Positions 1 through 23,186 of a stretch of 27,603 nucleotides of DNA are shown here, piece by piece. The position numbers and the translations under genes were made by a program. Origin of the DNA: Paraphysomonas bandaiensis (taxonomy: Eukaryota > Protista > Chrysophyceae); assembly GCA_965644295.1 (NCBI GenBank), contig CBFFRP010000573.1, positions 1-27,603 of the forward strand. Reading direction: 5' to 3'. Numbering within the stretch: position 1 is the first letter of the stretch; every line of letters begins with the position of its first letter. Under the pieces are notes generated by a model. The model worked only from the letters and a program-made list of their open reading frames with translations. It was not told the DNA's origin and ran no database searches.

Positions 1-655
1 TTTCTGCGTAATATTCTTCGGTGCGGGAAGGTATACTCTCATCTGTGAGTATGTACACACGTAATTACCTTATCGGTTGCTGGGAGATACACCTGGTAAT
101 CCAACTTTATCTTCCGAATATCCCACTAGGTATCCAATCTTTGATTTATCGTCCCAGTCCTCTTCGCCTGTCCGCCTTAGGTGTCAATATATAAGCTTTG
201 CACCCCCATACTCTAAAATATTTCAAACTGGGTGGCTGACCTGTGACATACTCATATGGGGACATGTATCCTCTGTCCGTCCTTGTAGGGAGTCTGATCA
301 GTGTATAGCGAGCAGCATGATACGCGTCTAACCAGAATGGAACCGGTAGGCCTGACTGCAACAACATCGCCAACGCCATCTCTGATGCAGTCCTGAATTT
401 TCGCCTCCCTCTTACTGCATTCATTTCCGGACCATCTGTTGAAGACCAAGTATGTTTGTAGCAGCCTTGTGATCTCAAATAGCTCCTAAGTTCTTGATTT
501 ATGAGTTCTCCAGCTCCATCAGCGTGGCAGTGGTCCACTCTCAGCTTATATTGCCTAATCTCTCCTTCGAACACCCTCTCTAAAAAACTGAATCACTTTC
601 TTCTTTAGTACGCTGGTTTACGCCTTTTACCCAGAACATCCTACTCGGGTGATGA
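1..655 (-). mobile_element. Ty1/copia integrase fragment (frameshifted, truncated at the telomeric array, runs off the window start)
   Basis: ORF 146..574 has HADGAGEL, PEMNA, SGLP.PFW.DA, NRLPT-like IRLPT, SPYE and FRVWGCKAY, the rve core and following region of copia integrase. Broken frames continue to about 655 (HPSRMFWVKGV..). The order is colinear with the integrase of the full element at 20600-21100. Confidence 0.92.
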
Positions 656-664
656 GTTAGTTTG

Positions 665-1953
665 CCCTAACCCTAACCCTAACCCTAACCCTAACCCTAA
701 CCCTAACCCTAACCCTAACCCTAACCCTAACCCTAACCCTAACCCTAACCCTAACCCTAACCCTAACCCTACCCTAACCCTAACCCTAACCCTAACCCTA
801 ACCCTAACCCTAACCCTAACCCTAACCCTAACCCTAACCCTAACCCTAACCCTAACCCTAACCCTAACCCTAACCCTAACCCTAACCCTAACCCTAACCC
901 TAACCCTAACCCTAACCCTAACCCTAACCCTAACCCTAACCCTAACCCTAACCCTAACCCTAACCCTAACCCTAACCCTAACCCTAACCCTAACCCTAAC
1001 CCTAACCCTAACCCTAACCCTAACCCTAACCCTAACCCTAACCCTAACCCTAACCCTAACCCTAACCCTAACCCTAACCCTAACCCTAACCCTAACCCTA
1101 ACCCTAACCCTAACCCTAACCCTAACCCTAACCCTAACCCTAACCCTAACCCTAACCCTAACCCTAACCCTAACCCTAACCCTAACCCTAACCCTAACCC
1201 TAACCCTAACCCTAACCCTAACCCTAACCCTAACCCTAACCCTAACCCTAACCCTAACCCTAACCCTAACCCTAACCCTAACCCTAACCCTAACCCTAAC
1301 CCTAACCCTAACCCTAACCCTAACCCTAACCCTAACCCTAACCCTAACCCTAACCCTAACCCTAACCCTAACCCTAACCCTAACCCTAACCCTAACCCTA
1401 ACCCTAACCCTAACCCTAACCCTAACCCTAACCCTAACCCTAACCCTAACCCTAACCCTAACCCTAACCCTAACCCTAACCCTAACCCTAACCCTAACCC
1501 TAACCCTAACCCTAACCCTAACCCTAACCCTAACCCTAACCCTAACCCTAACCCTAACCCTAACCCTAACCCTAACCCTAACCCTAACCCTAACCCTAAC
1601 CCTAACCCTAACCCTAACCCTAACCCTAACCCTAACCCTAACCCTAACCCTAACCCTAACCCTAACCCTAACCCTAACCCTAACCCTAACCCTAACCCTA
1701 ACCCTAACCCTAACCCTAACCCTAACCCTAACCCTAACCCTAACCCTAACCCTAACCCTAACCCTAACCCTAACCCTAACCCTAACCCTAACCCTAACCC
1801 TAACCCTAACCCTAACCCTAACCCTAACCCTAACCCTAACCCTAACCCTAACCCTAACCCTAACCCTAACCCTAACCCTAACCCTAACCCTAACCCTAAC
1901 CCTAACCCTAACCCTAACCCTAACCCTAACCCTAACCCTAACCCTAACCCTAA
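665..1953. repeat. Telomeric (CCCTAA)n array, about 215 units, oriented as the left telomere of the sequence to its right
   Basis: Directly visible. One 5-nt unit (CCCTA) near 770, otherwise perfect. Confidence 0.99.
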
Positions 1954-2157
1954 TCGAATAGTTTGGTCTAATTACAGTGTACCGACTTGGGAGTCTTGGA
2001 AGACAGTGCGAGGTTCAGAGGCATTGCTAAGATACCTGAGGTCCCACTCTAACTATCTTGTTCGGGCCCTATTACCCAAGAGGGGAAAGAAGCGCTCCAG
2101 GTCAGTTGATTCGACGGAAGAAGATGCCCAGTCTGAGGAGGAGGGCTCGTCGAGTTA
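1954..2157 (+). pseudogene. C-terminal part of a chromodomain from a Ty3/gypsy (chromovirus) pol, 5'-truncated by the telomere
   Basis: Manual translation from 1955 gives RIVWSNYSVPTWESWKTVRGSEALLRYLRSH...SSS*, matching the chromodomain pattern V.W.GY...TWE.....AL..YL. A polypurine tract and TGT follow downstream. Confidence 0.75.
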
Positions 2158-2326
2158 GTTTAGGGATTATGAGTTTTGACGGTTAAAATCCGCTCTGTCC
2201 ATGTAGTGGACACCTATGATAAGGTTCTCGTAAGTCAGAATAATGCTTGGAGTGAGATGTAGGGTAGTAGTGGTGATTTTTTTTTTAGGAGTAGTAGTTT
2301 TCGTAGGCTAAATGCCGGGTTTTTTC

Positions 2327-2550
2327 AAAAAAAAAAGGAGGGAAGGGGTAGTGTGGCTTGAAACCCCTGCCTTTTGGGAAAACCTTAGGTTTTTAGATTT
2401 GCGATCACTCTCCTTCAGGGATTGCTTTGGGCACATCCCTTCAGGATCGTGATATAGCGATAGGCAGTTGCTTCATGCCAGTCTATACATACATGATTCT
2501 TATATGCATAATAACCATATATTCCTAGTCTTCTTTCTCTTGGTGTCTGT
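2327..2550 (+). mobile_element. Polypurine tract and start of the gypsy 3' LTR (right boundary uncertain)
   Basis: A10-GGAGGGAAGGGGTAG is immediately followed by TGTGGC at 2352, downstream of the chromodomain stop. No second LTR is present for comparison. Confidence 0.6.
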
Positions 2551-2551
2551 C

Positions 2552-4564
2552 AGCTACGGGGTAAAAAAAATTAAAAAATATCCCACTTTTACGAATATTT
2601 GGATCACCGTATAACGGCCTTGCCGAACAAAAAATGTTCGGAAAATCGGTTTATCTCCACCGTATAATTATGATATCTAGAATATCTCGATTTTACGAAC
2701 ACATTATTGTTCGGCATTTTTTTACCGTTTGGCCACTATCGCCATTCAAACCATACAACACCAATGCCCATAAACTGCAAGAACAAAGAACTTAGAACAA
2801 ACAAAGAACTTAGAACAAACCAAGCACAATGGATATTATTAGAGAGCAAAGTGAGTTCAGAGATGAGATTGCACAGCAAACCAAGCAGATGCGGTTAACG
2901 GATAGCACCCGCAGGCAATATGCAGACAGGGTCAGGGCCTTTGCACATTGGCTTGATGAGCATTACCCCGCCTGTACCTCATTTCGATGACACTAATGGC
3001 CCGGTTCTATCCGTTGAAGAATGGGAAGACATACTGCCTGGCTTCACATCATTCTATCCTGAGAATTTTAGAGTGGCTTTGCCTTATCTTCTTGCTTCGC
3101 TGGCATATCATCATGACTGGCTATTAGAAACTCTTTCACCAAATCATCCTCTGTTTCTTCAAAGAGTTTGGACAAGTGGTATACTACAACGTCTACGACC
3201 GAAAGTATTAACTGGTGTGTTTCGAAATGATGTGTCAAGAATGAATGCTACTGGTGTTCCACCCAATGTGATTCTAGCTAATCGTATGTCGTCGCTGGAA
3301 GCAAATGTCGGGAACTTATCTAGAGATATGCGAGGAATGCAAACGACATTACCGGAAGCATTGTGTACGAGAATGCTTGATAAGTTTACAGTTAATGGCG
3401 CGGTGCCAATAACTAGTACCGACATCGATAGTCTACGTGAAACACTTTTAGAAGAAATCAGAACAAGATGTACTCCACATAATGTGGAGCAAATATCTAC
3501 ACAAGAAGAGCAATCCACATCACAAGAGAAGCCTGGATTTTACACATGGGGAGGGCACCATCATTTGTTTCCAGAGGGCTTTCGTTTTCCAAAAGGTAAC
3601 ATAAAAATGCTGTGGGATCTGTGGTGGGGGGGAGAACCTCAGAGACATATATTACCCTACAGAAAAATCAAAGGCTTCGATTTATCCCGAACTGACCGGG
3701 TAAACTGGAGTAAATGTACCTGCATCATGAACGCACTAGTCTCCAAGGGCATAGAGATGAACGAGATCGGAGCAGTAGAGGATATTAGTAGCCTACTACC
3801 ACGACAAAGAGATGCGTTATTCAGCAAAGTGTTTATACCTTTCTGTATGAACATATTCGCGGTTGCTAATCCCGTTCTTCTCGATGATATAGGCATCGGA
3901 AAAATGTCATATACGACATTCTACGATTACATGAAGGGCCGCAAGAGAAATAAACGTAGACGGAATGAAATGGAGCAAACGGAAGAAGATAATTGACTGG
4001 CACATGTCTCTGTTTGTGTCGTATATACGTGAGGGGGTCTGTGAGACTATTAACAGTCACCTTCACGTATATACATGAACAGACATCGCATCAATGGAGG
4101 GGTTGATGAGAATATGACGCTCAAGTAGATAGCTATCGGCTTCTGGTGTAGATATCATCTTGTTTCATGGCACTACTGACAGTTTAAAGTAACATATAAA
4201 GATGAACGTTAGATGACATACACATACAACACCATTCTACAACAGTACTCTACCACAATTATACAACAGTATACAGCAGTAATACTACATAATACCGTTC
4301 TGTTCGTATACTGTTCGTAAAAGCGGACCTTCTATAAATATATCAGTAAACGCAGAATACCCACATTACTCTAGTAATAAAAGACGACCTTTGCCTAAAA
4401 AAATTATTCTCATAAGTTATGAGCTCAAAACGCTCACAGAGCCGTATTCACTGTATTCTATGTATTCTATATCAAGAATAATGCGCGATGGTAAACTTAC
4501 TTTTTTTGATTGGCTTAAATTTGATTGTTAAACAGATCCACACCTCAAATGGGTAAGGAGCTAT
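2552..4564 (+). mobile_element. Crypton-type (tyrosine recombinase) element, non-autonomous deletion derivative; boundaries tentative
   Basis: Contains YR N-terminal and C-terminal coding parts. AGCTA occurs as a direct repeat at about 2552 and 4559. Subterminal TTTTACGAA motifs on the left are mirrored by TTCGTAAAAG near 4314. Confidence 0.55.
2829..3996 (+). pseudogene. Crypton tyrosine recombinase lacking its catalytic core (53-aa N-terminal frame 2829..2990 plus out-of-frame C-terminal ORF to 3996)
   Basis: The N-part MDIIREQ..LTDSTRRQYADRVRAFAHWLDEHYP resembles a YR N-terminal helix. The C-part has PHF, ALPYLLASLAYH.DWL...L...HPLF, M.ATGVPP and YTWGG..H.FPEGFRFP..LWDLWW.G, recalled from stramenopile Crypton proteins. 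No R-H-R-Y catalytic segment lies between them. Confidence 0.7.
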
Positions 4565-4578
4565 CGGGGGACAGCGTA

Positions 4579-4632
4579 TAACCCTAACCCTAACCCTAAC
4601 CCTAACCCTAACCCTAACCCTAACCCTAACCC
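4579..4632. repeat. Interstitial telomeric tract (TAACCC)9
   Basis: Directly visible; preceded by GGACAGCGTA at 4569..4578. Confidence 0.97.
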
Positions 4633-5329
4633 TCCTCCATAATGATAACAATATAAATGTACAACAATGAATATAAATATGTATGTCTACAATTACAATG
4701 CTATCTACAAGCAATTTCAAGAGTGAGGAAATTGCATCTTATTATCAATAATTTATATAAACACTACCTACGATTCCGTGATCAATGGAATGAACATCAT
4801 TCATATTCAATACCAAACACATCAGTCTAACACAGTTGATCATAATAACTCATTACAACTGTATAAGGGAAGATACATTCAGTATTCTCATTGTAGTTGA
4901 AGCCTTGTATGCGTACTTCTAAGTACAATCAATCCCCAATAAGCACTGAAGGAAATACGTAATGTATAACTGTATTACTGGATAATCTGGCAATACACAT
5001 CTATCAGTGTGGATATCAAACCCGGAATTCTCCAGTAAACTTCTCCAGCCTTAAAATCAAGATATATATATATCATCCATCATCATTATCATCATTATGT
5101 CTCATTATTGATAATCATGTCTTTCTTTGTCTTTTGAATGATTATGTAAATATCAATGATAAGTATGAAATGTCATAGTCATAATATATCGTATATCTTA
5201 GTGTGAGTTATGACAATAATAATAATATTCAATCTATGTTGTACAAATAGTATGTACAAACCTAAGCATATACAACAGAGAGCTTGTAGAATAGAATAAC
5301 CTGATAGCTGGTTATTACAGGACAGCGTA

Positions 5330-5356
5330 TAACCCTAACCATAACCATAACCCTAA
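5330..5356. repeat. Degenerate interstitial telomeric tract TAACCC-TAACCA-TAACCA-TAACCC-TAA
   Basis: Directly visible; preceded by GGACAGCGTA at 5320..5329. Confidence 0.85.
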
Positions 5357-5429
5357 TAAAAAAAACTTTCGATTTCAGCTTGATTACACAAAACACATAT
5401 TGACAACACAGCAGTATGAACACTAACAG

Positions 5430-8400
5430 CTATATCAGCACAGTTTCGTCAGTCAATATGTTTGACATTTTGTCCGCATCAATGGCATAATTTACTCTAG
5501 CAGCTACCGCGCATGGAATATCAATATGACAGCGCTGTTGAATGATGCAGTTGTCTAACTCCATAATAATCTAAACGAACAATCAGTTAGATGGTCATCC
5601 ATTAAATTGAGGTAGACAATAACATACATCAGAAAAAGATGGTCTAGACGACGGATCAGCACACCAGCATTTCTCAATAAGTGAATAGAGCTCTGCATTG
5701 AGTTTTATTGGGGTGAACTAAATGAGAAATGTCAGTTTCACCTGAGGGAATACCAACTGGCATGGGAGGGCGTATATTCCTTTTGCACATCAGCTCTTCA
5801 GCAATTCTCATATCACTTATTTCAATCATAGTGAGGTCATCATCAGAAACAAGTGGAAAATCTCCGCCTCGACGTTCGGATATGCGATTCCTCTCAAAAA
5901 CTGCCGTAGGGGCGGAGTTGCTCTGTGAAGAATCAGGGGAATGCTTTGAGGGTTTTCCCCCAGCATATAACTCAGCTGGAACAATTAAACTTCCTGCAAT
6001 AGACTTCCTAGCGCTCACATGAGGGGCTGACGTATCAGATGATATCGCTACTTCCCTGTCAGGGTCTCCACTGAAGCTTCTAGAGCGTGATCTATGCTTG
6101 GATCTTGTTGTGTTAGTTTGTGAACGACTCTGATCACCTTGTCTAATGGAATATTCATAATTATATTGCCTTTACACAAGCAACTTACTTACTTTTGGGT
6201 CTTTTCCTGTGTTCGCTGTTTTGCAGGTGTTGCGCCCAGGGAACTCGAGTGGCTAAACACACCAAGAAACGACGAACCCTGTGATTGATGGGAAGCTTCT
6301 TTCCCACCACCCCGCTGCTCGCTAATTATCTTGAGTAGAGGGTGATCAAAAGTGGATGCATGACATCGCACAGAGTCCTCTTGCAACATTGCAACGGAAA
6401 TCATAACAGATGGGACGCGCCAGGTAAGTAGCTCCCATAGCACGATCCCAAAACTGAACACATCTGACGCCTTGCTTGCACCTTGACCCAAAATCATCTC
6501 AGGAGCAGCCCATCCTGCAGTTCCCATCTCACCCACACCACCTGATTTACTGGACAAAGAGTGGGCTTTGTTGGCACCAGATCTATCGATAATGCTTTCT
6601 CCGAAATCAGCAATCTTAGCGTTGAAATTCTCGTCTAGCAACACGTTCATCGACTGGGTAGCGCAAACATAAAACTATAAAAAGCATTTTCTATTAACAT
6701 TACCTTGAGGTCTCGGTGGGTAATGTTTTGAAAATGTAAATAGTTCATTCCGTTGGCGACCTACGTAAAATATATTACATAATATATCATTAAAACACTC
6801 CCCGAGTGGTACCTGCAAGGCACACAACAGTGGTTCAAATTCATTAGAATTCGCATTCAGGGTGGATTTATGCAGGAGACTACTCCGCAAACTAGGCAGT
6901 TTCGACGTGCCTATTCCTCCTCTCCAAATACTGCGTTGCGTACTTCGATTGGGCTCTTCGATCCCATCGTCAAGCTTGCTTTGAGCCATGGGGTTTTTTA
7001 CAGCTGCCGGGTCGTGGTCTGAGCCATCCGTAGCAGTCGTTGCTCGGTAGCTTTGTATATGATGAACATCAGTGACTAGCATGGATGCTCGGTTAGTGGT
7101 ATTAGCGCCAGAAGGAAGCACAGGTAAAGGACTCATTTCAGTGCTGCCGCCAGTCCCAGCTGAACGTGTACTTCCCCTGGAGGCCAATCTCTTCTCGAAT
7201 GCTTCTCGCTCAGCTTGAAGTTGCTTGAACACATCACCATTAGAGCAGAACTTCATAACGATGCCTAGAGACGGTGGGTCCACCAATACACCATAAAAAT
7301 CGACAATATTCTCGTGCGCCAAACGCTTGAAGATATTGGCTTCCGCTTTGAAAAATTTTATATTATCCCTTGTCAGAAGATCAAACTTGAAACGCTTTAC
7401 GACAGCTAGCTTCCTACGCCAGAGATGAATTTCTACACTAACGTCAACCTGTTCCATTATTTTAGATCGGTAGTAGAGTTCGGTCTTAGGGATGACAACA
7501 TCTTTGTAATTTGGAAGCTCTGACCAAGTCATCTGCTTGTAAATGAGCAGGACATATGTCACACGTACCCTGAACCACATACCTCATTGGTGTGGTGAAT
7601 CAACTGATCTTCTTCATCATCGTCTACATCAGTGCTCCAATACTGACAGTCTCGCTTTAAAGTAAGATATACCACAGGGCCAAAACTAAAGAAGTGGGCG
7701 AGCTCCGATAAATCTAAAGCACATATACCTAAACGAGAAGTAAAATTATTCCTCATAGGTAGGCCACTACATACGCACCGAAGTTAGCAAGCTGGAAATC
7801 TAATGACAGCTGACATCCACGACTTATCACAAGGGCTGTATATATCGCGATCATGTACTTGCTGTACCGAAGAATTGCATATCTATCGGAATTGGTGTAT
7901 CGAAAAAAAGCTAAGGCCAAAATGTTCATAACTACAGTGAGACATCCTCGCACTAGTAATGAAATCTCCATGTTACGGCTAATCCAATAATTAGACTCTG
8001 GCCCCGGCTTATAGACAATAATAAACAGTCCTGTGAAAAATGTAGTGGCCGCCCAAAAACTGTTAAGACATGGTAAGCGACAACCATATATTCCATTAAA
8101 AATCACCTGGCCACAAACCAAGCACGATAAAAGTTATTCTTCCCGATCGATGACGAGCATAACAGCAATATAACAAGCAACTCTACAAAACTTGAAACAG
8201 CAAAACAAAAGCAATGCGCCACTGCGAACATACGTTCGTCGCTTGTATTTAAATCATTCTTTTCGTCATCTTTGGTGTTTGTAACATCAAATATCATCAA
8301 CGCTCCCCAGCATATAGTCCAGCACCCCTGGTACACACTTGCCATCACACCAAATACACAAATATACAGTAACTTACCACCAACATCATTAAGCTCATAT

Positions 8401-9880: not shown

Positions 9881-10392
9881 TACCTATATATTTGAAGGAA
9901 ATACGTTCGTAGTAGTAAATATAAACTATAAATAGTATATACTAGATACCAGCGTTGTGTACAATATATATTATGTTACACTACATTGTAAGTTAATTTC
10001 CCAACGATACTCTTTCTAAACGATCGAAGAATATATATTTAATTGGACAATATCAAAATATTATTCCTTATTCTCAAACTCTCATTCCAATAGTGTGATA
10101 GAATCAAAATAATTACTAAGCTGTAGTTATTACTATTACTCGGGGGGCACAATAGACAGTAATATAGTAGACACCGGGAAAATATAGTACTTAGTTAGCC
10201 TGATCACGCCACATCAAATTATCAAATTGCCTTCTCATCCGAGCTACCACGATATCACTCGCTACCATGTTAGAATTGGACATTACACTGAAGTTAGCCT
10301 TGCTTTGTTGAACACAATGTACTAACAATTGAAAATTATAATTATTAATCTGTATACTTCACTACATATGCATGTAAATATATATAAATATG

Positions 10393-10493
10393 GTGTTACT
10401 AAGTTGTTACTAAGTGTGAATAGAAGTAAGTGTTACTAAGTAAGTGTTACTAAGTTGTTACTAAGTGTGAATAGAAGTAAGTGTTACTAAGTG
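10393..10493. repeat. Subterminal tandem repeat of the foldback arm (51-bp unit x2, six TGTTACTAAGT cores); mirrored at about 14202..14302
   Basis: Directly visible. Confidence 0.9.
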
Positions 10494-11447
10494 TCGAAAG
10501 GTTATGTAAGTAAAAGTTACGTTGTATCGAATGTTAGTTAATGGTAAAAATGAAACAAACTAAGACTAAGGAACAGATAGCAAAAAATATTACTAAATAA
10601 GTAGAAACAAACGATGCAGGAAGCAGTGTTAAGTCAGCCGACGGAAATGAATTGGTTTCAGTGAGCTGGTCATGATACCGTGATGTCTCCAGTTCGGCTG
10701 TTCGAGCTGCCACATGCTGCTGCTCGTTTAAAGTATCCATTCCCTTGCGGCGAATATTAGTAACGAATCATTTCATCCAGTGTATCTGGACAAGTAAGAG
10801 CATGCAATGTCTGATAGAAGGGATCAGGACTGCGGTCTTCCATGATCGAACACTCTGCAGGATCGTCAGGCAAGGGAGTAAAATCTTCCTCAAGCTCCAG
10901 AGCGCAAGTAAAACTCCAGGATTGTCAGGCAAGGGAGTTTTACTTGCGCTCTGGAGTATATTCTGGATACGAGTGTATGGATGGGAGTTCTATGAGCTCT
11001 ACTGGGATGCCCTTCGCGCTAACGAGAACAAAAGCGTCGTTTTTCATCGTCTTGTCCAAAAAAATATACCGCAGAAGCCAATCAGAAATGGAGCATGCCA
11101 ATAAAGAAGTGTCACTCCAGGCAACACTCACTGTGAGGACACGAATCTTAGTCGTGATGATAACTCTGACTTGATTGCAGTGAAGTTGTGATTGTGTAGT
11201 AATCGCAAATGCGGCTGACTAAAGTGTGACGTCGAACAGAACATTGAAGTATGGGCAGGCACTGGTATGTGAACAGCGTTTTGGAACTCCAAGAAGCAGA
11301 TAGGGATGGTTTGAGGGAACAAGATACCATCATCCAGCTGAAATCTTGATGTCGTGCTGCAGAAACCGCAACTTCAATTTTGAAGTAGCGAATGCCACGC
11401 ACTTAGATAGTGATGTCTTGGAATTCCAATAAGGCAACAATTCTGTG

Positions 11448-11608
11448 TGTGGGAATATAAGATCCAGCAGAATATGTCGATCCAGCAAAAAAATCCAGGT
11501 TTTTTTGATGCATGCTGTTTTTTGACGAATATATTTCAGAGAAATAACGAAAAAAGGTCGATTTTTTTGCTGGATCGACATATTCCGCTGGATCGACTTA
11601 TTCCCACA
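11448..11608. mobile_element. 161-bp MITE-like element with about 50-bp imperfect TIRs (TGTGGGAATA...TATTCCCACA)
   Basis: The TIRs contain a repeated GATCCAGC and share GAATATGTCGATCCAGCAAAAAAATC in inverted orientation. No convincing TSD. Confidence 0.7.
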
Positions 11609-13086
11609 GAAGGAATTTGAGAGAGCGAATACACTGTGAATCGTGCCATTATTAACTGTGAGTTCGTATTGCAAGCTTCATCACTATGCGGGAGAGCTAT
11701 TGTGAAGGTTTATGCCTCATTATCGACAAAATGAGCGTGACAAGTGGGTTCCCGTGACCTGTAGAAAAGCGGAGAGTGTATGTCTCGAGGTTATTGAAGA
11801 CGACGCAAGCAAGCAGTATGCCTATTAGTATTGGAGGGGAGAAAAGCATTTGAAATGCGCAGTGAAAGTTCAGTCCGAGTACGTCGTTGATTCATGTGCT
11901 GATTTACAGCATGAAACCGTGTTTGAAATGGAAAAAGAAGACCATGCAGGTGAGGTAGTGGATATGCTCGACTTACTGAGCAATGCTCTCAGTCGTGGTA
12001 AAAAGAGAAATAATGTATCAGAAATGGCTTTAAGCTCCAGAGACTCCCGGCTAGTGTCAGGTAATAAGTATTGGTACTAGAGACTAGAGTAGTAGAGTGT
12101 GTAGCTGGAGTACTATTGGTCTGTTGAGTAATAATCAGTTCATTCATTGGGGTACAGTTATTGCTTTTCTGTTACATGCGCAAGCAATAATGAGAACTAG
12201 ATGGTGTACTGTAATGAACTATAAGATTAGGTGAAATTTAGCATATATCAAGATTTGTCGTTAATTTGCAGCAAACGCATGCATGTGTATGTAACATCTG
12301 GTGAACATCTGTTTTCAGCAACATCTGTTTATTATATGTTCACCAATTATATAGTATATAGTATATAGTCATAAGTCATACTTAGTCATACATCAGTAAG
12401 AGACATACACATGCATGCGTTTGCTGCAAATTAACGACAAATCTTGATATATGCTAAATTTCACCTAATCTTATAGTTCATTACAGTACACCATCTAGTT
12501 CTCATTATTGCTTGCGCATGTAACAGAAAAGCAATAACTGTACCCCAATGAATGAACTGATTATTACTCAACAGACCAATAGTACTCCAGCTACACACTC
12601 TACTACTCTAGTCTCTAGTACCAATACTTATTACCTGACACTAGCCGGGAGTCTCTGGAGCTTAAAGCCATTTCTGATACATTATTTCTCTTTTTACCAC
12701 GACTGAGAGCATTGCTCAGTAAGTCGAGCATATCCACTACCTCACCTGCATGGTCTTCTTTTTCCATTTCAAACACGGTTTCATGCTGTAAATCAGCACA
12801 TGAATCAACGACGTACTCGGACTGAACTTTCACTGCGCATTTCAAATGCTTTTCTCCCCTCCAATACTAATAGGCATACTGCTTGCTTGCGTCGTCTTCA
12901 ATAACCTCGAGACATACACTCTCCGCTTTTCTACAGGTCACGGGAACCCACTTGTCACGCTCATTTTGTCGATAATGAGGCATAAACCTTCACAATAGCT
13001 CTCCCGCATAGTGATGAAGCTTGCAATACGAACTCACAGTTAATAATGGCACGATTCACAGTGTATTCGCTCTCTCAAATTCCTTC

Positions 13087-13247
13087 TGTGGGAATAAGTC
13101 GATCCAGCGGAATATGTCGATCCAGCAAAAAAATCGACCTTTTTTCGTTATTTCTCTGAAATATATTCGTCAAAAAACAGCATGCATCAAAAAAACCTGG
13201 ATTTTTTTGCTGGATCGACATATTCTGCTGGATCTTATATTCCCACA
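13087..13247. mobile_element. Mirror copy of the 161-bp MITE-like element in the right arm
   Basis: Reverse complement of 11448..11608. Confidence 0.7.
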
Positions 13248-14645
13248 CACAGAATTGTTGCCTTATTGGAATTCCAAGACATCACTATCTAAGTGCGTGG
13301 CATTCGCTACTTCAAAATTGAAGTTGCGGTTTCTGCAGCACGACATCAAGATTTCAGCTGGATGATGGTATCTTGTTCCCTCAAACCATCCCTATCTGCT
13401 TCTTGGAGTTCCAAAACGCTGTTCACATACCAGTGCCTGCCCATACTTCAATGTTCTGTTCGACGTCACACTTTAGTCAGCCGCATTTGCGATTACTACA
13501 CAATCACAACTTCACTGCAATCAAGTCAGAGTTATCATCACGACTAAGATTCGTGTCCTCACAGTGAGTGTTGCCTGGAGTGACACTTCTTTATTGGCAT
13601 GCTCCATTTCTGATTGGCTTCTGCGGTATATTTTTTTGGACAAGACGATGAAAAACGACGCTTTTGTTCTCGTTAGCGCGAAGGGCATCCCAGTAGAGCT
13701 CATAGAACTCCCATCCATACACTCGTATCCAGAATATACTCCAGAGCGCAAGTAAAACTCCCTTGCCTGACAATCCTGGAGTTTTACTTGCGCTCTGGAG
13801 CTTGAGGAAGATTTTACTCCCTTGCCTGACGATCCTGCAGAGTGTTCGATCATGGAAGACCGCAGTCCTGATCCCTTCTATCAGACATTGCATGCTCTTA
13901 CTTGTCCAGATACACTGGATGAAATGATTCGTTACTAATATTCGCCGCAAGGGAATGGATACTTTAAACGAGCAGCAGCATGTGGCAGCTCGAACAGCCG
14001 AACTGGAGACATCACGGTATCATGACCAGCTCACTGAAACCAATTCATTTCCGTCGGCTGACTTAACACTGCTTCCTGCATCGTTTGTTTCTACTTATTT
14101 AGTAATATTTTTTGCTATCTGTTCCTTAGTCTTAGTTTGTTTCATTTTTACCATTAACTAACATTCGATACAACGTAACTTTTACTTACATAACCTTTCG
14201 ACACTTAGTAACACTTACTTCTATTCACACTTAGTAACAACTTAGTAACACTTACTTAGTAACACTTACTTCTATTCACACTTAGTAACAACTTAGTAAC
14301 ACCATATAGACTTTACTTCCTTTGTAACTGTATTCACCTGTAACACCTATGAGTTTATATTAACTATTGTACACTAGTAACTCACTTCAATTGCAGAATT
14401 GCAGTGTATATCGTAGAATCATACTGCAGAGCTCATCACAACCAAGAATTCAATACGCTCTCGATACTTCAATAACGGCTAACAAATATATTCAATATAT
14501 ATTCCACATATTTCTATTTAGATATCTATGCTAACAATACAGTTTTATGAAATATGACCTTTGTGTTTCGGTAAATATTGACGTTTTTATTAGGTTAATT
14601 CGAAGTGCCAACAAATAGCATCCACATGCAGCTTGCTCAAAAAAA

Positions 14646-17809: not shown

Positions 17810-18026
17810 AGGCAAGGGTAAACAGAGTAGTGGAGAGAATTAATCACGCTTTTGCTCGAGTAGCCTTCTTTTATTGAATTAATAATACTATACTTTAAAT
17901 AATGAAATATAATTTATCCACTTTATCCATTAAAAAGTAATACTATAGCCATTGAACGCCTACTAACAGCTGGCTTATGGCACTGGGGCTTTGTCCGGTG
18001 TACGACGGCCGCACCATACGAGCCCA

Positions 18027-18333
18027 TATTAATTTACGCTTTTAGTTAGTGCAATATTGACTGATTGATATTATAGGAGATATAGTAAGTTTATGATGTT
18101 GTAGCCCTATGAGTTAGGAACCACGTCATTCACCAACATCAACATTCTGTTCTACAAATCATATCTTTAACAGCTACTATATTTTCAGTTTCTTTGTATA
18201 CTTGTAATAGCTACTCCTATACTGTAGTCATGTATATTCTGTATTTCATTGCTACATAGAATACAGGATAACTACTAGCGATTGGCTTTACCAAACTTCA
18301 AGTACGCACGTAGGAGTTGGTTGTAGTTCAATA
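18027..18333 (-). repeat. 3' LTR (307 bp)
   Basis: Identical by eye to 22880..23186. Confidence 0.95.
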
Positions 18334-18343
18334 CTCCCACTCA
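18334..18343 (-). other. Copia polypurine tract (TGAGTGGGAG)
   Basis: Immediately precedes the 3' LTR on the minus strand. Confidence 0.85.
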
Positions 18344-18381
18344 ATGAACATATCAGAATATACTGTACTAAGCAGGTCTAC

Positions 18382-21300
18382 TTAGTGCGATACCATAGTG
18401 TGCACATGCTGATAGTGCAGCTTCTCGGACAAGGCTTTAGTCATCACGTCTGCTGTCATCTCTGCCGTTGGCACATGATTCAGCCTGACGATACAGCCTC
18501 CCACTTGCTCTCGAATCCAATGATACTTGATCCGAATATGCTTGGAACGTTTATGATTTACCGGGTTCTGAGCTAGATCAATCGCACTCTTGCTGTCCAT
18601 ATTCAAGATTGTTGGAGACGCATTCTTACTGAGCTCAAATCCACGAATTCCGAGCTCTGTCATCACCCCTCGTATCCATACAATCTCCTGAATTGCAGCA
18701 TATGCAGCCATATATTCAGCTTCCATAGTCGACGTAGCCACTGTTGGCTGCAGCCTGGACTGCCATGCAATTGGAGCACCCCACAGATATACGATATACC
18801 CTGTAGTGGATCTGCATGTATCCAGATCTCCGGCCCAATCTGCATCAGAGTACACACATAGAGGGTCTTCATCTGTGAAATTAGGAAATATGATACCTTG
18901 ATCAACTGTATTTTCTAAATACAATAAAGTATGCAGAGCAGCTTGACATGCAGCGTACGTGGGTCTTGTGGTGAACCGGGAGAGAAGATTTACTGTATAT
19001 GCCATGTCTGGTCTAGTATGCACTGCCAAATACATTAAGGCACCAATAACAGATTGATAGGGAAATGCATCAACGTATTCTCTCTGTTTTCGAGTTTCTT
19101 CCTCTTTTGCATCCTTGGACAACTTTAGGCCAGGTGGTAGAGGTGTGGTTGCCTTGCACCGTCTCTTCTTTTCTGACAACAAGTGATTGAATCTGGCCAC
19201 AACATCTTTAGCATATGCAGACTGATGTAACTTAATCTGGCCATTATGACGCTCAATGGTAAGACCTAAATAATGCTTAAGATCCCCCATATCTTGCATG
19301 GCATATTGAGTCTTAAAAGCGCTGATGACTTCTTCAATATGACGGCTGTCAGAGCTGAGCACAATGATATCATCTACATACACAAGTATCATGTGTAGGT
19401 TAGTATCAGTGCCCTTGAGGACAAATAAACATGGGTCAAGAACACATTGTTTATACCCCATCGCCTTTATACTGTCCTTCAGCATTGAATGCCAATTTCG
19501 AGGCGCTTGTTTTAGGCCATACAAACTCTTCAGAATCTTCAAACAACAGCCTTGTGGAATATCTATTCCTGCAGGTGGAGACATAAACACATCTTCGTCC
19601 AGATCTGCGTACGGAAATGCCGTTTCTACATCGAGTTGACGGAGTTGCAAATTGTATCGCAGAGCCAGTGCCAGTGCTAGCCTAAATGATACACCTTTAG
19701 CTACTGGGGAGAATGTCTCATTATAGTCGACTCCTTGTTCTTGAGTAAACCCTTTCGCCACAAGTCGAACTTTGAACTTCTTAATTTTTCCAAGATGGTC
19801 GCGCTTTACTTTAAAGACCAATTTAGATTTTATGATTTTTCGGTGTTTCGGCCTTCGGACAATCTTCCAGCATGTCCTTCGTTCAAGCTTGTGCACCTCC
19901 TTCCTGGTAGCTTCAATCCAGTATGTTCTCTGTGGAGTCTTCTTTGCTTCTGCTAGCGTCTGTGGCTCTTTAATTGTGCTGTTGGAGGAATCAAGAAACA
20001 ATGAGACATCGCCGAGGACACCAACGTTAACAATGTGCCGTTTTTTTCGAGGTCGTTTTTCAGTTCTGGGATTTCGATCTGCCCCACCTGTTGAAGATGC
20101 GCCCCGATATGAGCGGTCAGGAGTCCTCTGCTCATTGTCACTGTCATTACAAGTCTGATCCAACTCATTTCGCAAACTATTAAACTTGTCGGTCTGACAC
20201 TTTGTAGAGTGAGTCATCTTTACAACATCTTTGATATGAATTGGAGTTTGCTCCTCGGTAGTATTTCCTTCAGTATCTAGTTTCCTATATGCAACAATGA
20301 CTCCTCTTCTCTCTATCACTCTGGTGGTAACATAACGCAGGTGTCCATCAAGATGTCTAAGGCCCACCAGGTACTGATAATCATTTACACTCTCTGCTGT
20401 TTCTGAGGTGTCAATTTGTAGATTATCTATTTCGTCGAAATACTCCTGTGAACGCTCTGGAATAGACTCATCAAACTGTGCATTGACTGCAACAATAATA
20501 GCATTCAGGTCTGGAATATATATTTGGTGTCCAACAGGTTGTTGACATTGACCCATATAGTATCCAGGCTTTCCCTTTTCTTTCCACTCTTTGCGGCGCA
20601 GCTCCTTCGGCACGATAGCCCATGCCTTGCAGCCCCAGATCTTCAAGTCACTCACATCTGGTGCAGTTCCAGTAATATACTCAAAAGGTGAGATGTATCC
20701 TTTCGTTGTCTTCGTAGGTAACCTGTTGATCAGATATACAGCATGCAAGACAGCTTTGAACCAGAATACTGATGGCATGCCACTATCGAGCAATATAGCA
20801 AGAGCCATCTCCTTCACTGTACGATTTTAGTGCGTTCCGATAGCGAATTCATTTCGGGTGTATCACGTGGAGTCCAAGTAACCTGTACAGTCCTTGTGCT
20901 GGTGGTTTCACGTAAGTACTGCCTGACATGTTGCCCTACTAATTCTCCTGCGCCATCTGCATGATATCGTCGTAGTTGCAATCCTTCTTTGACAAGTTGG
21001 GTCTCTACCATGTCCTTCATACACTTTAACACTTCACTCCCAGTCTTGTTTTTCAACCCATAAGCCCATACATGTTTTGCATCACTGTGCTTGAATAGTA
21101 ACACATGTTTGTAGCCTTCCATCGATGGCGTGTTTAGGACTTCCATCGTATCTGCACTGAGCACCCCTCTCTCCTTTGGGTTGTTGTCTAAGTTCATCAA
21201 CTGGCGTGGAGTCCTGAAGTTCTTTCTAGTGAGTTTCGATCGCATGCAGGTATTACATTTGCATATCGTTTTTTTGTGTTTTTTTCTGAAATATTTCTTG

Positions 21301-22880
21301 TCCAGATTTATTCCATCAACTAGGCCTCGGCGGTCGGACTCAGTCAGTTTATCATAGTTGACATGGCCAAGTCTTTTGTGCCATAGAATTCGCTGGTCAT
21401 CAAACCCCTGCTCCTCAAGTGCTGCTGAGGATTCTTCTCCAAGCTGAAGTAAGTCTTCGAGTCGAACTGGATATAATCCATTAACACTTCTCTGTCTAAT
21501 GAGTGTCTTGTTCGTAGTCTTATTTCGAATGACGACTTCATCATTATCGAACGTCACAACACAGCCCCTATCTGTGATACTCTTCATATCTACGAGGTTC
21601 TTACTTGCTTCAGGTGCGTAGTACACCTTCTTAAAGCTTCCTACATCGCCAACACTGTGTATTGACAGTTTACCTTTGTTCGCTGTGGACATCTGCCTAT
21701 CAGCGCGCTGAAGGTTGGTCATGTGGTTTTTGGAGGTAAGGATCATCTTGTTGCACCCGCTGTCTAAATAAATAACATCTGACATGCTCTGTGCTAGATT
21801 CACCTCTTCTTCCACACATATCATCGATTCGTATCCCGCTTCATCTTCTGAATCATGTACAGACACTCGCGGTTTCTTCTTGTTCTTGTAGGGTGCCGTT
21901 TCCCTTCTAGAGTCTCGCCCCCGTTTAGAACTGACCACTGCAGCTTTAGCAGTCTTCAAGTGGAAGCAGTCTTTAGTCTGATGGCCTGGGATGTCACATA
22001 TCTCACACACAGGTAGCCTTGTTTTGTTATCACCCCTGTTTCTGTGATCTCTATCTTTTCTCTGTGATCTTGTCCCCTTCATCCTCTTTATGACATGTTC
22101 TGGAGTCTTGCACTCCCTAGCAAAGTGGCCAAGTTTTTTGCACTTATTGCATCTGCCCTTTCTCTTGTGCTCTTTCCATTTACTGTCATCCACTGCTTGA
22201 TTGACACTGTCTTCCCCTGAATTTTGCAACGCATGCTTGCCGAATGATGTGTTTTCATACCCTTTGATTAGGCTGCTTGCTCTTGCGTATGTCACATCGT
22301 TTGCTGTATACAGGCTGTGTGCTAATTGGGAATATCTCTTGTCTGTGAGACCTTCCTTTAGTCGAGTGAGCTTGTCGTCTTCCGTGACTTCACGACCTAG
22401 ATTCTCGAGAATCTTGGCCTGGGCTTCAACGCTGTTGAGGTAATCTTCATTGAATTGAACTTTGTGACCTCTGCCTGTACTGTATTCTTTTCAACATTGA
22501 GAAATCTCTCTTCCAGTGCCTGTAGTAACCCTTTTGCTGTACTTCCTTCGTAGAGAGCCGCTGTTGTGCCTGCTTTTGGGTGAGCATTGCACACTTCCAT
22601 CAGGAAGGAGTACGCGGTCTCGTTCCGGGTGTTCCAGAGTTTCTTCGCTTTGCCTAGCTAGTCGCTTCTTCTGTGCATCAGTCATATGAGCTCCCGCTGG
22701 GACTGTAGAGTCTAGATCATGAATGTGCCTTGGTTTATCCTTTGAGAGGACAAGATGAGCTCGATTGTGTCTCATGAGGAATGAGGTGAAGAACTTCTTG
22801 AATTTCTTAAAGTTCAGTTCCTCGAAGGGAGGTACCTTTGAGCCTGAGGCGACATTCGTGAAATTTCCATCCGCTGCCAT
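18382..22880 (-). pseudogene. Copia gag-pol polyprotein broken by three frameshifts (about 22640, 22435 and 20825)
   Basis: Two CCHC knuckles (CNKCKKLGHFAREC, CEICDIPGHQTKDC), protease YLDSG, WHKRLGH..CNTC, integrase D-D-E (SADT, HADG, SER), RT QLDV/LYGLKQAPR/YVDD and RNase H YSDADWAG/EAEY/ADVMTK. Confidence 0.95.
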
Positions 22881-23186
22881 ATTAATTTACGCTTTTAGTT
22901 AGTGCAATATTGACTGATTGATATTATAGGAGATATAGTAAGTTTATGATGTTGTAGCCCTATGAGTTAGGAACCACGTCATTCACCAACATCAACATTC
23001 TGTTCTACAAATCATATCTTTAACAGCTACTATATTTTCAGTTTCTTTGTATACTTGTAATAGCTACTCCTATACTGTAGTCATGTATATTCTGTATTTC
23101 ATTGCTACATAGAATACAGGATAACTACTAGCGATTGGCTTTACCAAACTTCAAGTACGCACGTAGGAGTTGGTTGTAGTTCAATA
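22880..23186 (-). repeat. 5' LTR (307 bp)
   Basis: Identical by eye to 18027..18333; followed on the minus strand by TGGCAGCGG. Confidence 0.95.

Follow-up and report, generated by a model that had tools for sequence, protein, structure and literature searches.

A 10-nt motif shared by two buried telomere tracts of the marine protist Paraphysomonas bandaiensis, most likely the edge of a repeated transposon-derived unit

A stretch of 27,603 nt from the chrysophyte protist Paraphysomonas bandaiensis (contig CBFFRP010000573.1 of assembly GCA_965644295.1; hereafter the window) contains three tracts of telomeric repeats, two of which are joined to the same 10-mer, GGACAGCGTA, in identical register. 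This 10-mer, here called the tag, is most likely the telomere-side edge of a repeated unit, E, which corresponds to the 3′ end of a chromovirus with its LTR (long terminal repeat)-like region, and not a free adapter. In the reading that we favour, although it stays tentative, the two junctions represent copies of a single junction type, with the second reduced to a 10-nt relic when another repeat, B, arrived. The initial annotation of this DNA had proposed a telomere-capture system that places a constant motif between telomeric repeats and unrelated cargo. The anatomy of that proposal is borne out, with a constant 10-mer and different DNA beyond it, whereas the free adapter with unrelated cargo is not, both cargos being multi-copy transposon DNA. 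A dedicated capture system is not established, and a known kind of chromosome-end dynamics accounts for the data no less well. As independent data, assembled contigs of four sequencing runs were used, with no raw reads; X1, X3 and X4 served for comparisons of DNA depth and contigs, and X15 is labelled as RNA by guess.

Two junctions of identical register in a layered chromosome end

The tag occurs in two exact copies in the window, both on the forward strand and 751 bp apart. Each copy is directly followed by TAACCCTAACC, and 21 nt are identical at both sites. Exact matching thereby confirmed what had been annotated, namely tag and TAACCCTAACC at 4569 and 5320, in the same register and on the distal side of two co-oriented tracts. 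All three tracts (Table 1) are C-strand tracts of the same orientation. Since CCCTAA on the forward strand places the chromosome end to the left, the tag lies on the distal side of tracts 2 and 3, with the junctions at 4578/4579 and 5329/5330. Both sites read (GGGTTA)n-TACGCTGTCC on the G-strand, so that the earlier placement of the constant motif 3′ of the G-strand repeats holds as well. The same is true of the statement that the flanks upstream of the two tag copies are unrelated; local alignment of the upstream 400 nt gave a score of 17 versus 17.6 +/- 3.0 for shuffled sequences. A third tag site with at most one mismatch was not found in the window, and the sites with two mismatches are not in a telomeric context. 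At its distal end, tract 1 has a junction unlike the other two, which reads gttagtttg-CCCTAA and is devoid of the tag.

By our own arithmetic, the chance that 10 nt are common to two of three distal junctions is approximately 3 x 4^-10, or about 3e-6. The recurrence of the tag at two tracts is real and not due to chance. Furthermore, a constant 10-mer in fixed register with different DNA beyond it indicates copying from a common template rather than independent end-joining. Read outwards, the window is a layered chromosome end, in which the chromosome is followed by tract 3, cargo B, tract 2, cargo A, tract 1 and further DNA. The tracts become shorter and more degraded inward, as expected for successive layers. 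Within tract 3, the same C-to-A change is present in two adjacent units (TAACCA TAACCA), and this pair looks templated or duplicated rather than the product of two independent mutations.

The contigs of the four runs bear on both junctions. Junction 2 is real, as it is crossed by an X4 DNA contig, which spans 5291-7900 with zero differences at single-copy depth, and by a spliced X15 contig, which spans 5299-5570. At junction 1, a 615-nt contig of X3 with a depth of 18.2 (single copy: approximately 3-6) joins 2213-2575 to 4336-4572 and carries 15 further letters. It aligns 4 nt into tag copy 1, up to a stretch (4573-4663) that was masked as repeat in the run comparison, with no read evidence inside tract 2. 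Approximately four copies of the LTR-like region that are free of the nested insertion described below run at least 4 nt into the tag in X3. If the 15 extra letters are collinear, as is assumed here, the contig crosses the whole tag and 9 nt of the repeat without branching and stops approximately 21 nt short of the unique-flank prediction in a 31-mer graph. On this condition, the contig ends hint that copies of E may diverge just after TAACCCTAA. Joints skipping either tract were not detected among the best-supported rows of the four runs, with 4573-4663 masked. The link between the two junctions over the 54-bp tract 2 is provided only by the assembly, and short-read contigs are unable to bridge it.

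Transposon nature of the two cargos

Cargo A, which separates tract 1 from tag copy 1, is the 3′ part of a Ty3/gypsy chromovirus that is cut in the integrase chromodomain. This assignment is based on the chromodomain, on relatives among Ty3 integrases, on a polypurine tract and on a step in sequencing depth. The chromodomain reading frame is open from 1955, ends at 2158 and yields a 67-aa piece, on which itself the Pfam model Chromo stayed below threshold. A phmmer search with this piece in 1.8 billion representative proteins retrieved P0075 (E 9.6e-13), which has six Pfam Chromo domains. It also matched P0077, P0078 and P0079, the C-termini of which have the same closing motif (WxGY..PTWEPW), and P0078 in turn matches the integrase part of Ty3 Gag-Pol (PDB 7q5b_A). 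Between tract 1 and the start of the chromovirus homology lies the 8-mer TCGAATAG, which is foreign to the chromovirus, since the sequence preceding 1962 is ...GAGGTGT in other family members.

Downstream of the polypurine tract, DNA depth is approximately doubled from the bin starting at 2352, as expected at the start of an LTR. In the second part of the LTR-like region (4336-4568), depth reaches 272 versus 40 in X1 and 996 versus 102 in X4. For cargo A as a whole, depth is 7-30x that of a single-copy protein-kinase region in X1 and higher in X4. The limits of the LTR are inferred from depth only. LTR ends commonly follow the TGT...ACA rule. The candidate ends TGTGG...GGACA fit this rule, in which case GGACA of the tag may lie inside the LTR and GCGTA may represent the flank. 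In X15, the summed contig depth over 1954-2550 amounts to 1.4e5 to 6e5, compared with approximately 83 for the kinase mRNA and approximately 16 beyond 2550. The chromovirus RNA, which ends inside the LTR, thus seems to be among the most abundant transcripts of the X15 sample.

The LTR-like region of cargo A is interrupted by a Crypton-like (tyrosine-recombinase) element. In X1, X3 and X4, contigs with a joint from 2575 to 4336 (1760 nt skipped, 6 nt shared) are found at approximately 4x single-copy depth. The open reading frame (ORF) 2920-3996 aligns to residues 381-589 of relatives with a length of 590 aa. Its C-terminal 210 residues align at 44%, and the best relative is 42% identical, which implies that the organism's own proteins seem to be absent from the searched protein collection. 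Sub-threshold Pfam matches were obtained for the 590-aa relatives to NDC10_II, a tyrosine-recombinase-like fold, and for an N-terminal piece (2829-2987) to Phage_int_SAM_4, a SAM-like integrase domain. Judged from its reading frames, the nested insertion is predicted to be non-autonomous, with an N-terminal piece, a subsequent frame change, a preserved C-terminal third and a catalytic core that has apparently been lost. Marine metagenomes commonly contain full-length relatives (approximately 590 aa), in many cases on contigs of approximately 3.0-3.2 kb. These contigs carry neither telomere repeats nor the tag, and the idea of a telomere-specific Crypton-like element was rejected.

Cargo B belongs to a family of very high copy number, whose depth amounts to 25-65x that of single-copy sequence in X1 and reaches 210x in X4. 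In each of the four runs, 3-5 contigs of this family match up to position 5319 and then show differing continuations. From these continuations it follows that family B ends at 5319 by its own structure, and this in turn means that the tag is not part of B and that B is a later arrival beside the tag. The 3′ end (5295-5319) consists of a 7-bp hairpin, formed by AATAACC and GGTTATT around an 8-nt loop, and a terminal ACA. On the left side, homology to other B copies extends beyond 4682, and the copy in the window is cut at 4633, the edge of tract 2. The other copies of B do not continue into the tag.

Table 1. Coordinates of the telomere tracts, tag copies, cargos and neighbouring features in the window.
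Feature	Position	Strand	Remarks
Tract 1	665-1953	+	(CCCTAA)215, nearly perfect; single CCCTA variant unit at approximately 770
Tract 2	4579-4632	+	(TAACCC)9, perfect
Tract 3	5330-5355	+	degenerate: TAACCC TAACCA TAACCA TAACCC TA
Tag copy 1, GGACAGCGTA	4569-4578	+	sequence match
Tag copy 2, GGACAGCGTA	5320-5329	+	sequence match; covered by X4 and X15 contigs without differences
Cargo A	1954-4568	+	3′ part of Ty3/gypsy chromovirus with nested Crypton-like element
8-mer TCGAATAG	1954-1961	+	between tract 1 and start of chromovirus homology; once in the window
C-terminal chromodomain end of Ty3/gypsy integrase	1962-2158	+	5′ side cut; stop codon 2156-2158
Polypurine tract AAAAAAAAAAGGAGGGAAGGGG	2327-2348	+	22 nt, read from the sequence
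LTR-like region, part 1	2352-2575	+	starts with TGTGG; depth step; abundant X15 RNA ends inside
Crypton-like (tyrosine-recombinase) element	2576-4335	+	1760 bp, internally deleted; inside LTR-like region of cargo A
LTR-like region, part 2	4336-4568	+	approximately 4-10 copies per genome, from depth
Cargo B	4633-5319	+	AT-rich, non-coding high-copy repeat; 5′ side cut; own 3′ end at 5319
Ty1/copia-type integrase fragment	1-664	-	joins distal end of tract 1 without tag
Single-copy protein-kinase gene	5299-7726	-	Pfam Pkinase on ORFs 6189-6650 and 6675-7580

Possible origins of the tag

Site 2 corresponds exactly to the last 10 nt preceding the tract at site 1, followed by a tract in the same register. 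A 10-nt relic of E accounts for the tag at the end of B as well as an adapter does. In such a scenario, several copies of E would each adjoin an interstitial telomere tract on its distal side. A shortened telomere would pair with the tract beside E and be extended along it, with the edge of E being copied first and always in this register. The extension would be recombination-dependent copying of the telomere-attrition-induced replication type or, with lower likelihood, reverse transcription from an E-type RNA whose tail is complementary to the telomere. The DNA-level process is favoured over the RNA route because cargo A appears to carry the LTR-like region past the end of the abundant RNA. 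Starting from what is directly observed, that is the layout, the transposon nature and copy numbers of the cargos, the end of B at 5319 and the tag regions in independent contigs, the following order of events can be proposed. At first, a copy of E would have joined tract 3, and the high-copy repeat B would then have been inserted or joined 10 nt from the edge of E. A chromosome break inside B, healed by telomerase, would have given rise to tract 2, onto which a second copy of E, already equipped with the Crypton-like insertion, would have been copied. Finally, this second copy may have been cut in the integrase gene and healed again, which would have produced tract 1.

Several points weigh against this reading. 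On its left, the shared motif begins exactly where B naturally ends, and a free adapter would account for this without an insertion event. In addition, the left side of B is lost at tract 2, leaving neither a target-site duplication nor a remnant of E to check. The natural end of the LTR of E is not established, the 15 letters of the X3 contig past 4572 fall in the masked stretch and are assumed to be collinear, and an X1 contig of the end of cargo A stops at 4532, so that copies may differ 36 nt before the tag. Finally, the evidence consists of contigs only, and the count of the tag covers the window.

A different origin, possible but unlikely in our view, is read-through by telomerase. At the 5′ boundary of its template UAACCCUAA, the enzyme would not stop but would also copy the adjoining 10 nt of the RNA, 5′-GGACAGCGUA, and thereby add TACGCTGTCC to the G-strand, possibly by run-off at the 5′ end of the RNA. 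End joining or template jumping would then link the resulting non-telomeric end to transposon cDNA or RNA. Run-off or a stop at a boundary explains the fixed length and register at both junctions, and a tag that starts exactly at the natural 3′ end of B is expected when a discrete end is joined. The anatomy equals that of the vertebrate interstitial telomeric sequences known as TERC-ITS type B (PMC8537989). To this extent the earlier suggestion that the motif is a copy of telomerase RNA fits and has a precedent, but a scan of the window with Rfam detected no telomerase RNA. The 3′ flank of the 9-nt template UAACCCUAA would be represented by the 8-mer TCGAATAG, which adjoins tract 1 on its proximal side. 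When the two tags are read through the tract, the series GGACAGCGTA-TAACCCTAA-TCGAATAG equals a 1.5-repeat template with both flanks. A bolder version, which we regard as slightly less probable, takes the tag and TCGAATAG as the two flanks of the telomerase RNA template (5′-GGACAGCGUA/UAACCCUAA/UCGAAUAG), with a telomerase that often overruns both boundaries and hands the end over to transposon cDNA or RNA.

Read-through is at odds with the behaviour of the tag region in X3, where it goes with E in approximately four copies (the whole tag being assumed) and would need later duplication. It is also at odds with the distal junction of tract 1, which is without tag. Published TERC-ITS are rare single insertions at internal breaks and not stacked layers of a chromosome end. 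Furthermore, a 21-mer and a 19-mer of tag and repeat had zero matches in JGI metagenome contigs and GTDB genomes. The 19-mer GGACAGCGTATAACCCTAA had one match in IMG/VR (L005:1180-1198), which lies on a 57.9-kb viral contig, within what appears to be a coding region and not followed by the repeat, and is taken as chance. Zero matches were also obtained for CCCTAACCCTAATCGAATAG and for a composite of both tags in pattern scans of public contigs. At the protein level, five ORFs of the window, including junction-spanning ones, had no exact record in the protein collection. A word search with the junction ORF gave 8 candidates and zero scoring matches under an E-value ceiling of 10, which excluded short matches to the tag only.

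With a smaller chance again, the tag may be the 3′ end of a telomere-attaching retroelement, be it an endonuclease-less Penelope-like element (PLE), an element of the Terminon type or a non-autonomous partner. An RNA ending in ...GGACAGCGUA(UAACCC)n would pair with the G-overhang, which then primes reverse transcription, and the two sites would be extremely 5′-truncated or template-switched copies. Orientation and register fit the attachment of Athena, Coprina and Terminon elements (PMC8557442; PMC6431247), the copies of which are 5′-truncated by telomere repeats, with other genes between the units. In the window, too, telomere repeats cap the 5′ sides of both cargos, B directly (4632/4633) and A after 8 nt (1953/1962), the C-rich repeats at the 3′ side face the buried tract, and the arrays are interspersed with other genes. 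The coding sense of cargo A is on the forward strand, as an RNA template would require, and GAC AGC GTA TAA translates as D-S-V-stop, with the stop codon opening the repeat.

The machinery of such an element was not detected, and the endonuclease-deficient PLE considered in the initial annotation found no support in the window. Rfam revealed no hammerhead in the whole window at E up to 5, neither beside the repeats nor elsewhere. A CUGANGA core was absent from the forward strand upstream of 4569 and 5320, with the nested insertion removed or not, and local RNA folds were no better than those of shuffled sequences. A Pfam scan of eight ORFs, which included all those of the window with more than 301 aa, yielded a copia reverse transcriptase (RVT_2), integrase parts and the kinase only, and no reverse transcriptase of the PLE clade. 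It also differs from known PLE and Terminon arrays that the two sites share only 10 nt, and the same 10-nt truncation occurring twice is unexpected for random 5′ truncation. The apparent extension of cargo A beyond the end of the abundant RNA points to a DNA source.

The least probable group of explanations comprises one-off short templated copying of the tag from junction 2 to junction 1, 750 bp away, in the course of end joining, a primer-binding-site remnant of two LTR elements, and misassembly in the telomere repeats. The short distance between the sites, the assembly-based link over tract 2 and the chance that both left flanks are natural retroelement ends speak for this group. It is opposed by the multi-copy state of E and the tag region in X3 and by the presence of junction 2 in X4 and X15; moreover, other copies of B do not run into the tag, and a polymerase stop exactly at the natural end of B would be a coincidence. 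The primer-binding-site remnant is retained only within this minor group, as the 10-mer lacks a TGG start and the window contains no tRNA. Tandem duplication was rejected because the sequences downstream of the two tracts are unrelated and the window holds no second copy of either cargo.

Neighbouring genes and relation to known chromosome-end systems

The chromosomal side of the layered region begins with the protein-kinase gene, for which an X15 contig shows six introns of 49-57 nt. Since the spliced contig reaches 5299, tract 3 and tag copy 2 lie inside the 3′ untranslated region of this gene, and the buried tract 3 is transcribed within the kinase mRNA in X15. At the opposite side of the layers, ORF 146-574 on the reverse strand matches Pfam SH3_retrovirus and is 51% identical to the pol product of a copia element at 18382-20817. 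Either this fragment and tract 1 were joined in another way than at the other two junctions, or their junction was created by the assembly within the telomere repeats. The copia element itself (18014-23166, reverse strand) is a Ty1/copia-type retrotransposon with 300-nt direct repeats that are 99% alike. It has two long ORFs, one of 493 aa with gag, protease and pre-integrase parts and one of 811 aa with integrase-SH3 and reverse transcriptase, and it looks young. Between kinase gene and copia element, positions 10388-14307 form a perfect foldback with 1905-nt arms of 100% complementarity, a 110-nt spacer and outer 49-nt tandem repeats, which may be a real palindrome or an assembly artefact.

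The layout resembles several systems described in other eukaryotes. In Pyricularia oryzae, very short 5′-truncated relics of the telomere-inserting retrotransposons MoTeR occur beside interstitial telomere tracts (PMC8381367; bioRxiv 10.1101/845669). In this fungus, interstitial telomeres delimit subterminal repeats that include LTR-like parts, and it has been proposed that a telomere which fails invades an interstitial tract, from which the sequence distal to it is then copied (PMC8381367). The window has in common with this system the putative short 3′ relics beside interstitial CCCTAA tracts and the LTR-like repeats bounded by interstitial telomeres. In contrast, the unit described here comes from a chromovirus instead of a non-LTR element of the MoTeR type, and it resides in a marine protist. 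Furthermore, the window revealed no autonomous element that targets telomeres, and the relic at site 2 is inferred.

In TERC-ITS type B of vertebrates, the last repeat is followed by a copy of the telomerase RNA sequence that adjoins the template on its 5′ side (PMC8537989; PMC2246262). These sites and the window have in common that a short non-telomeric piece immediately follows the 3′ end of the G-strand repeats, in the same orientation. The vertebrate cases differ in being single insertions at internal breaks, with empty orthologous sites, whereas the tracts described here are stacked near a chromosome end. Moreover, the tag is attached to a repeated block, and telomerase RNA is only a candidate source of the 10-mer.

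Interstitial telomere tracts are also known to mark the boundaries of subtelomeric duplicons in yeast and human. Co-oriented tracts that degrade inward and separate blocks common to several ends are shared with these duplicons. Unlike there, the blocks in P. bandaiensis consist of transposon fragments, and only 10 nt remain at one junction.

The biological meaning of the tag depends on its origin. If it and TCGAATAG flank a telomerase template, chromosome ends of this organism would grow by telomerase-tagged capture of mobile-element copies, and the genomic scars would reveal the sequence around the template, and perhaps also the 5′ end, of the telomerase RNA of this protist. A single-copy transcribed locus would in this case read GGACAGCGUAUAACCCUAA(UCGAAUAG), and with read-through or run-off the 5′ end of the telomerase RNA would fall at GGACAGCG. 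To our knowledge, no telomerase RNA is known for this lineage, and a tag derived from it would offer a possible handle on this molecule. Whether derived from telomerase RNA or from a telomere-attaching retroelement, the tag would provide a fixed k-mer for tracing every past attachment event. Should the tag be nothing more than the border of a subterminal repeat, the window would clearly document an ordinary history, in which a chromosome end of a marine protist was repeatedly lost, healed and re-extended, with transposon fragments as the only building blocks.

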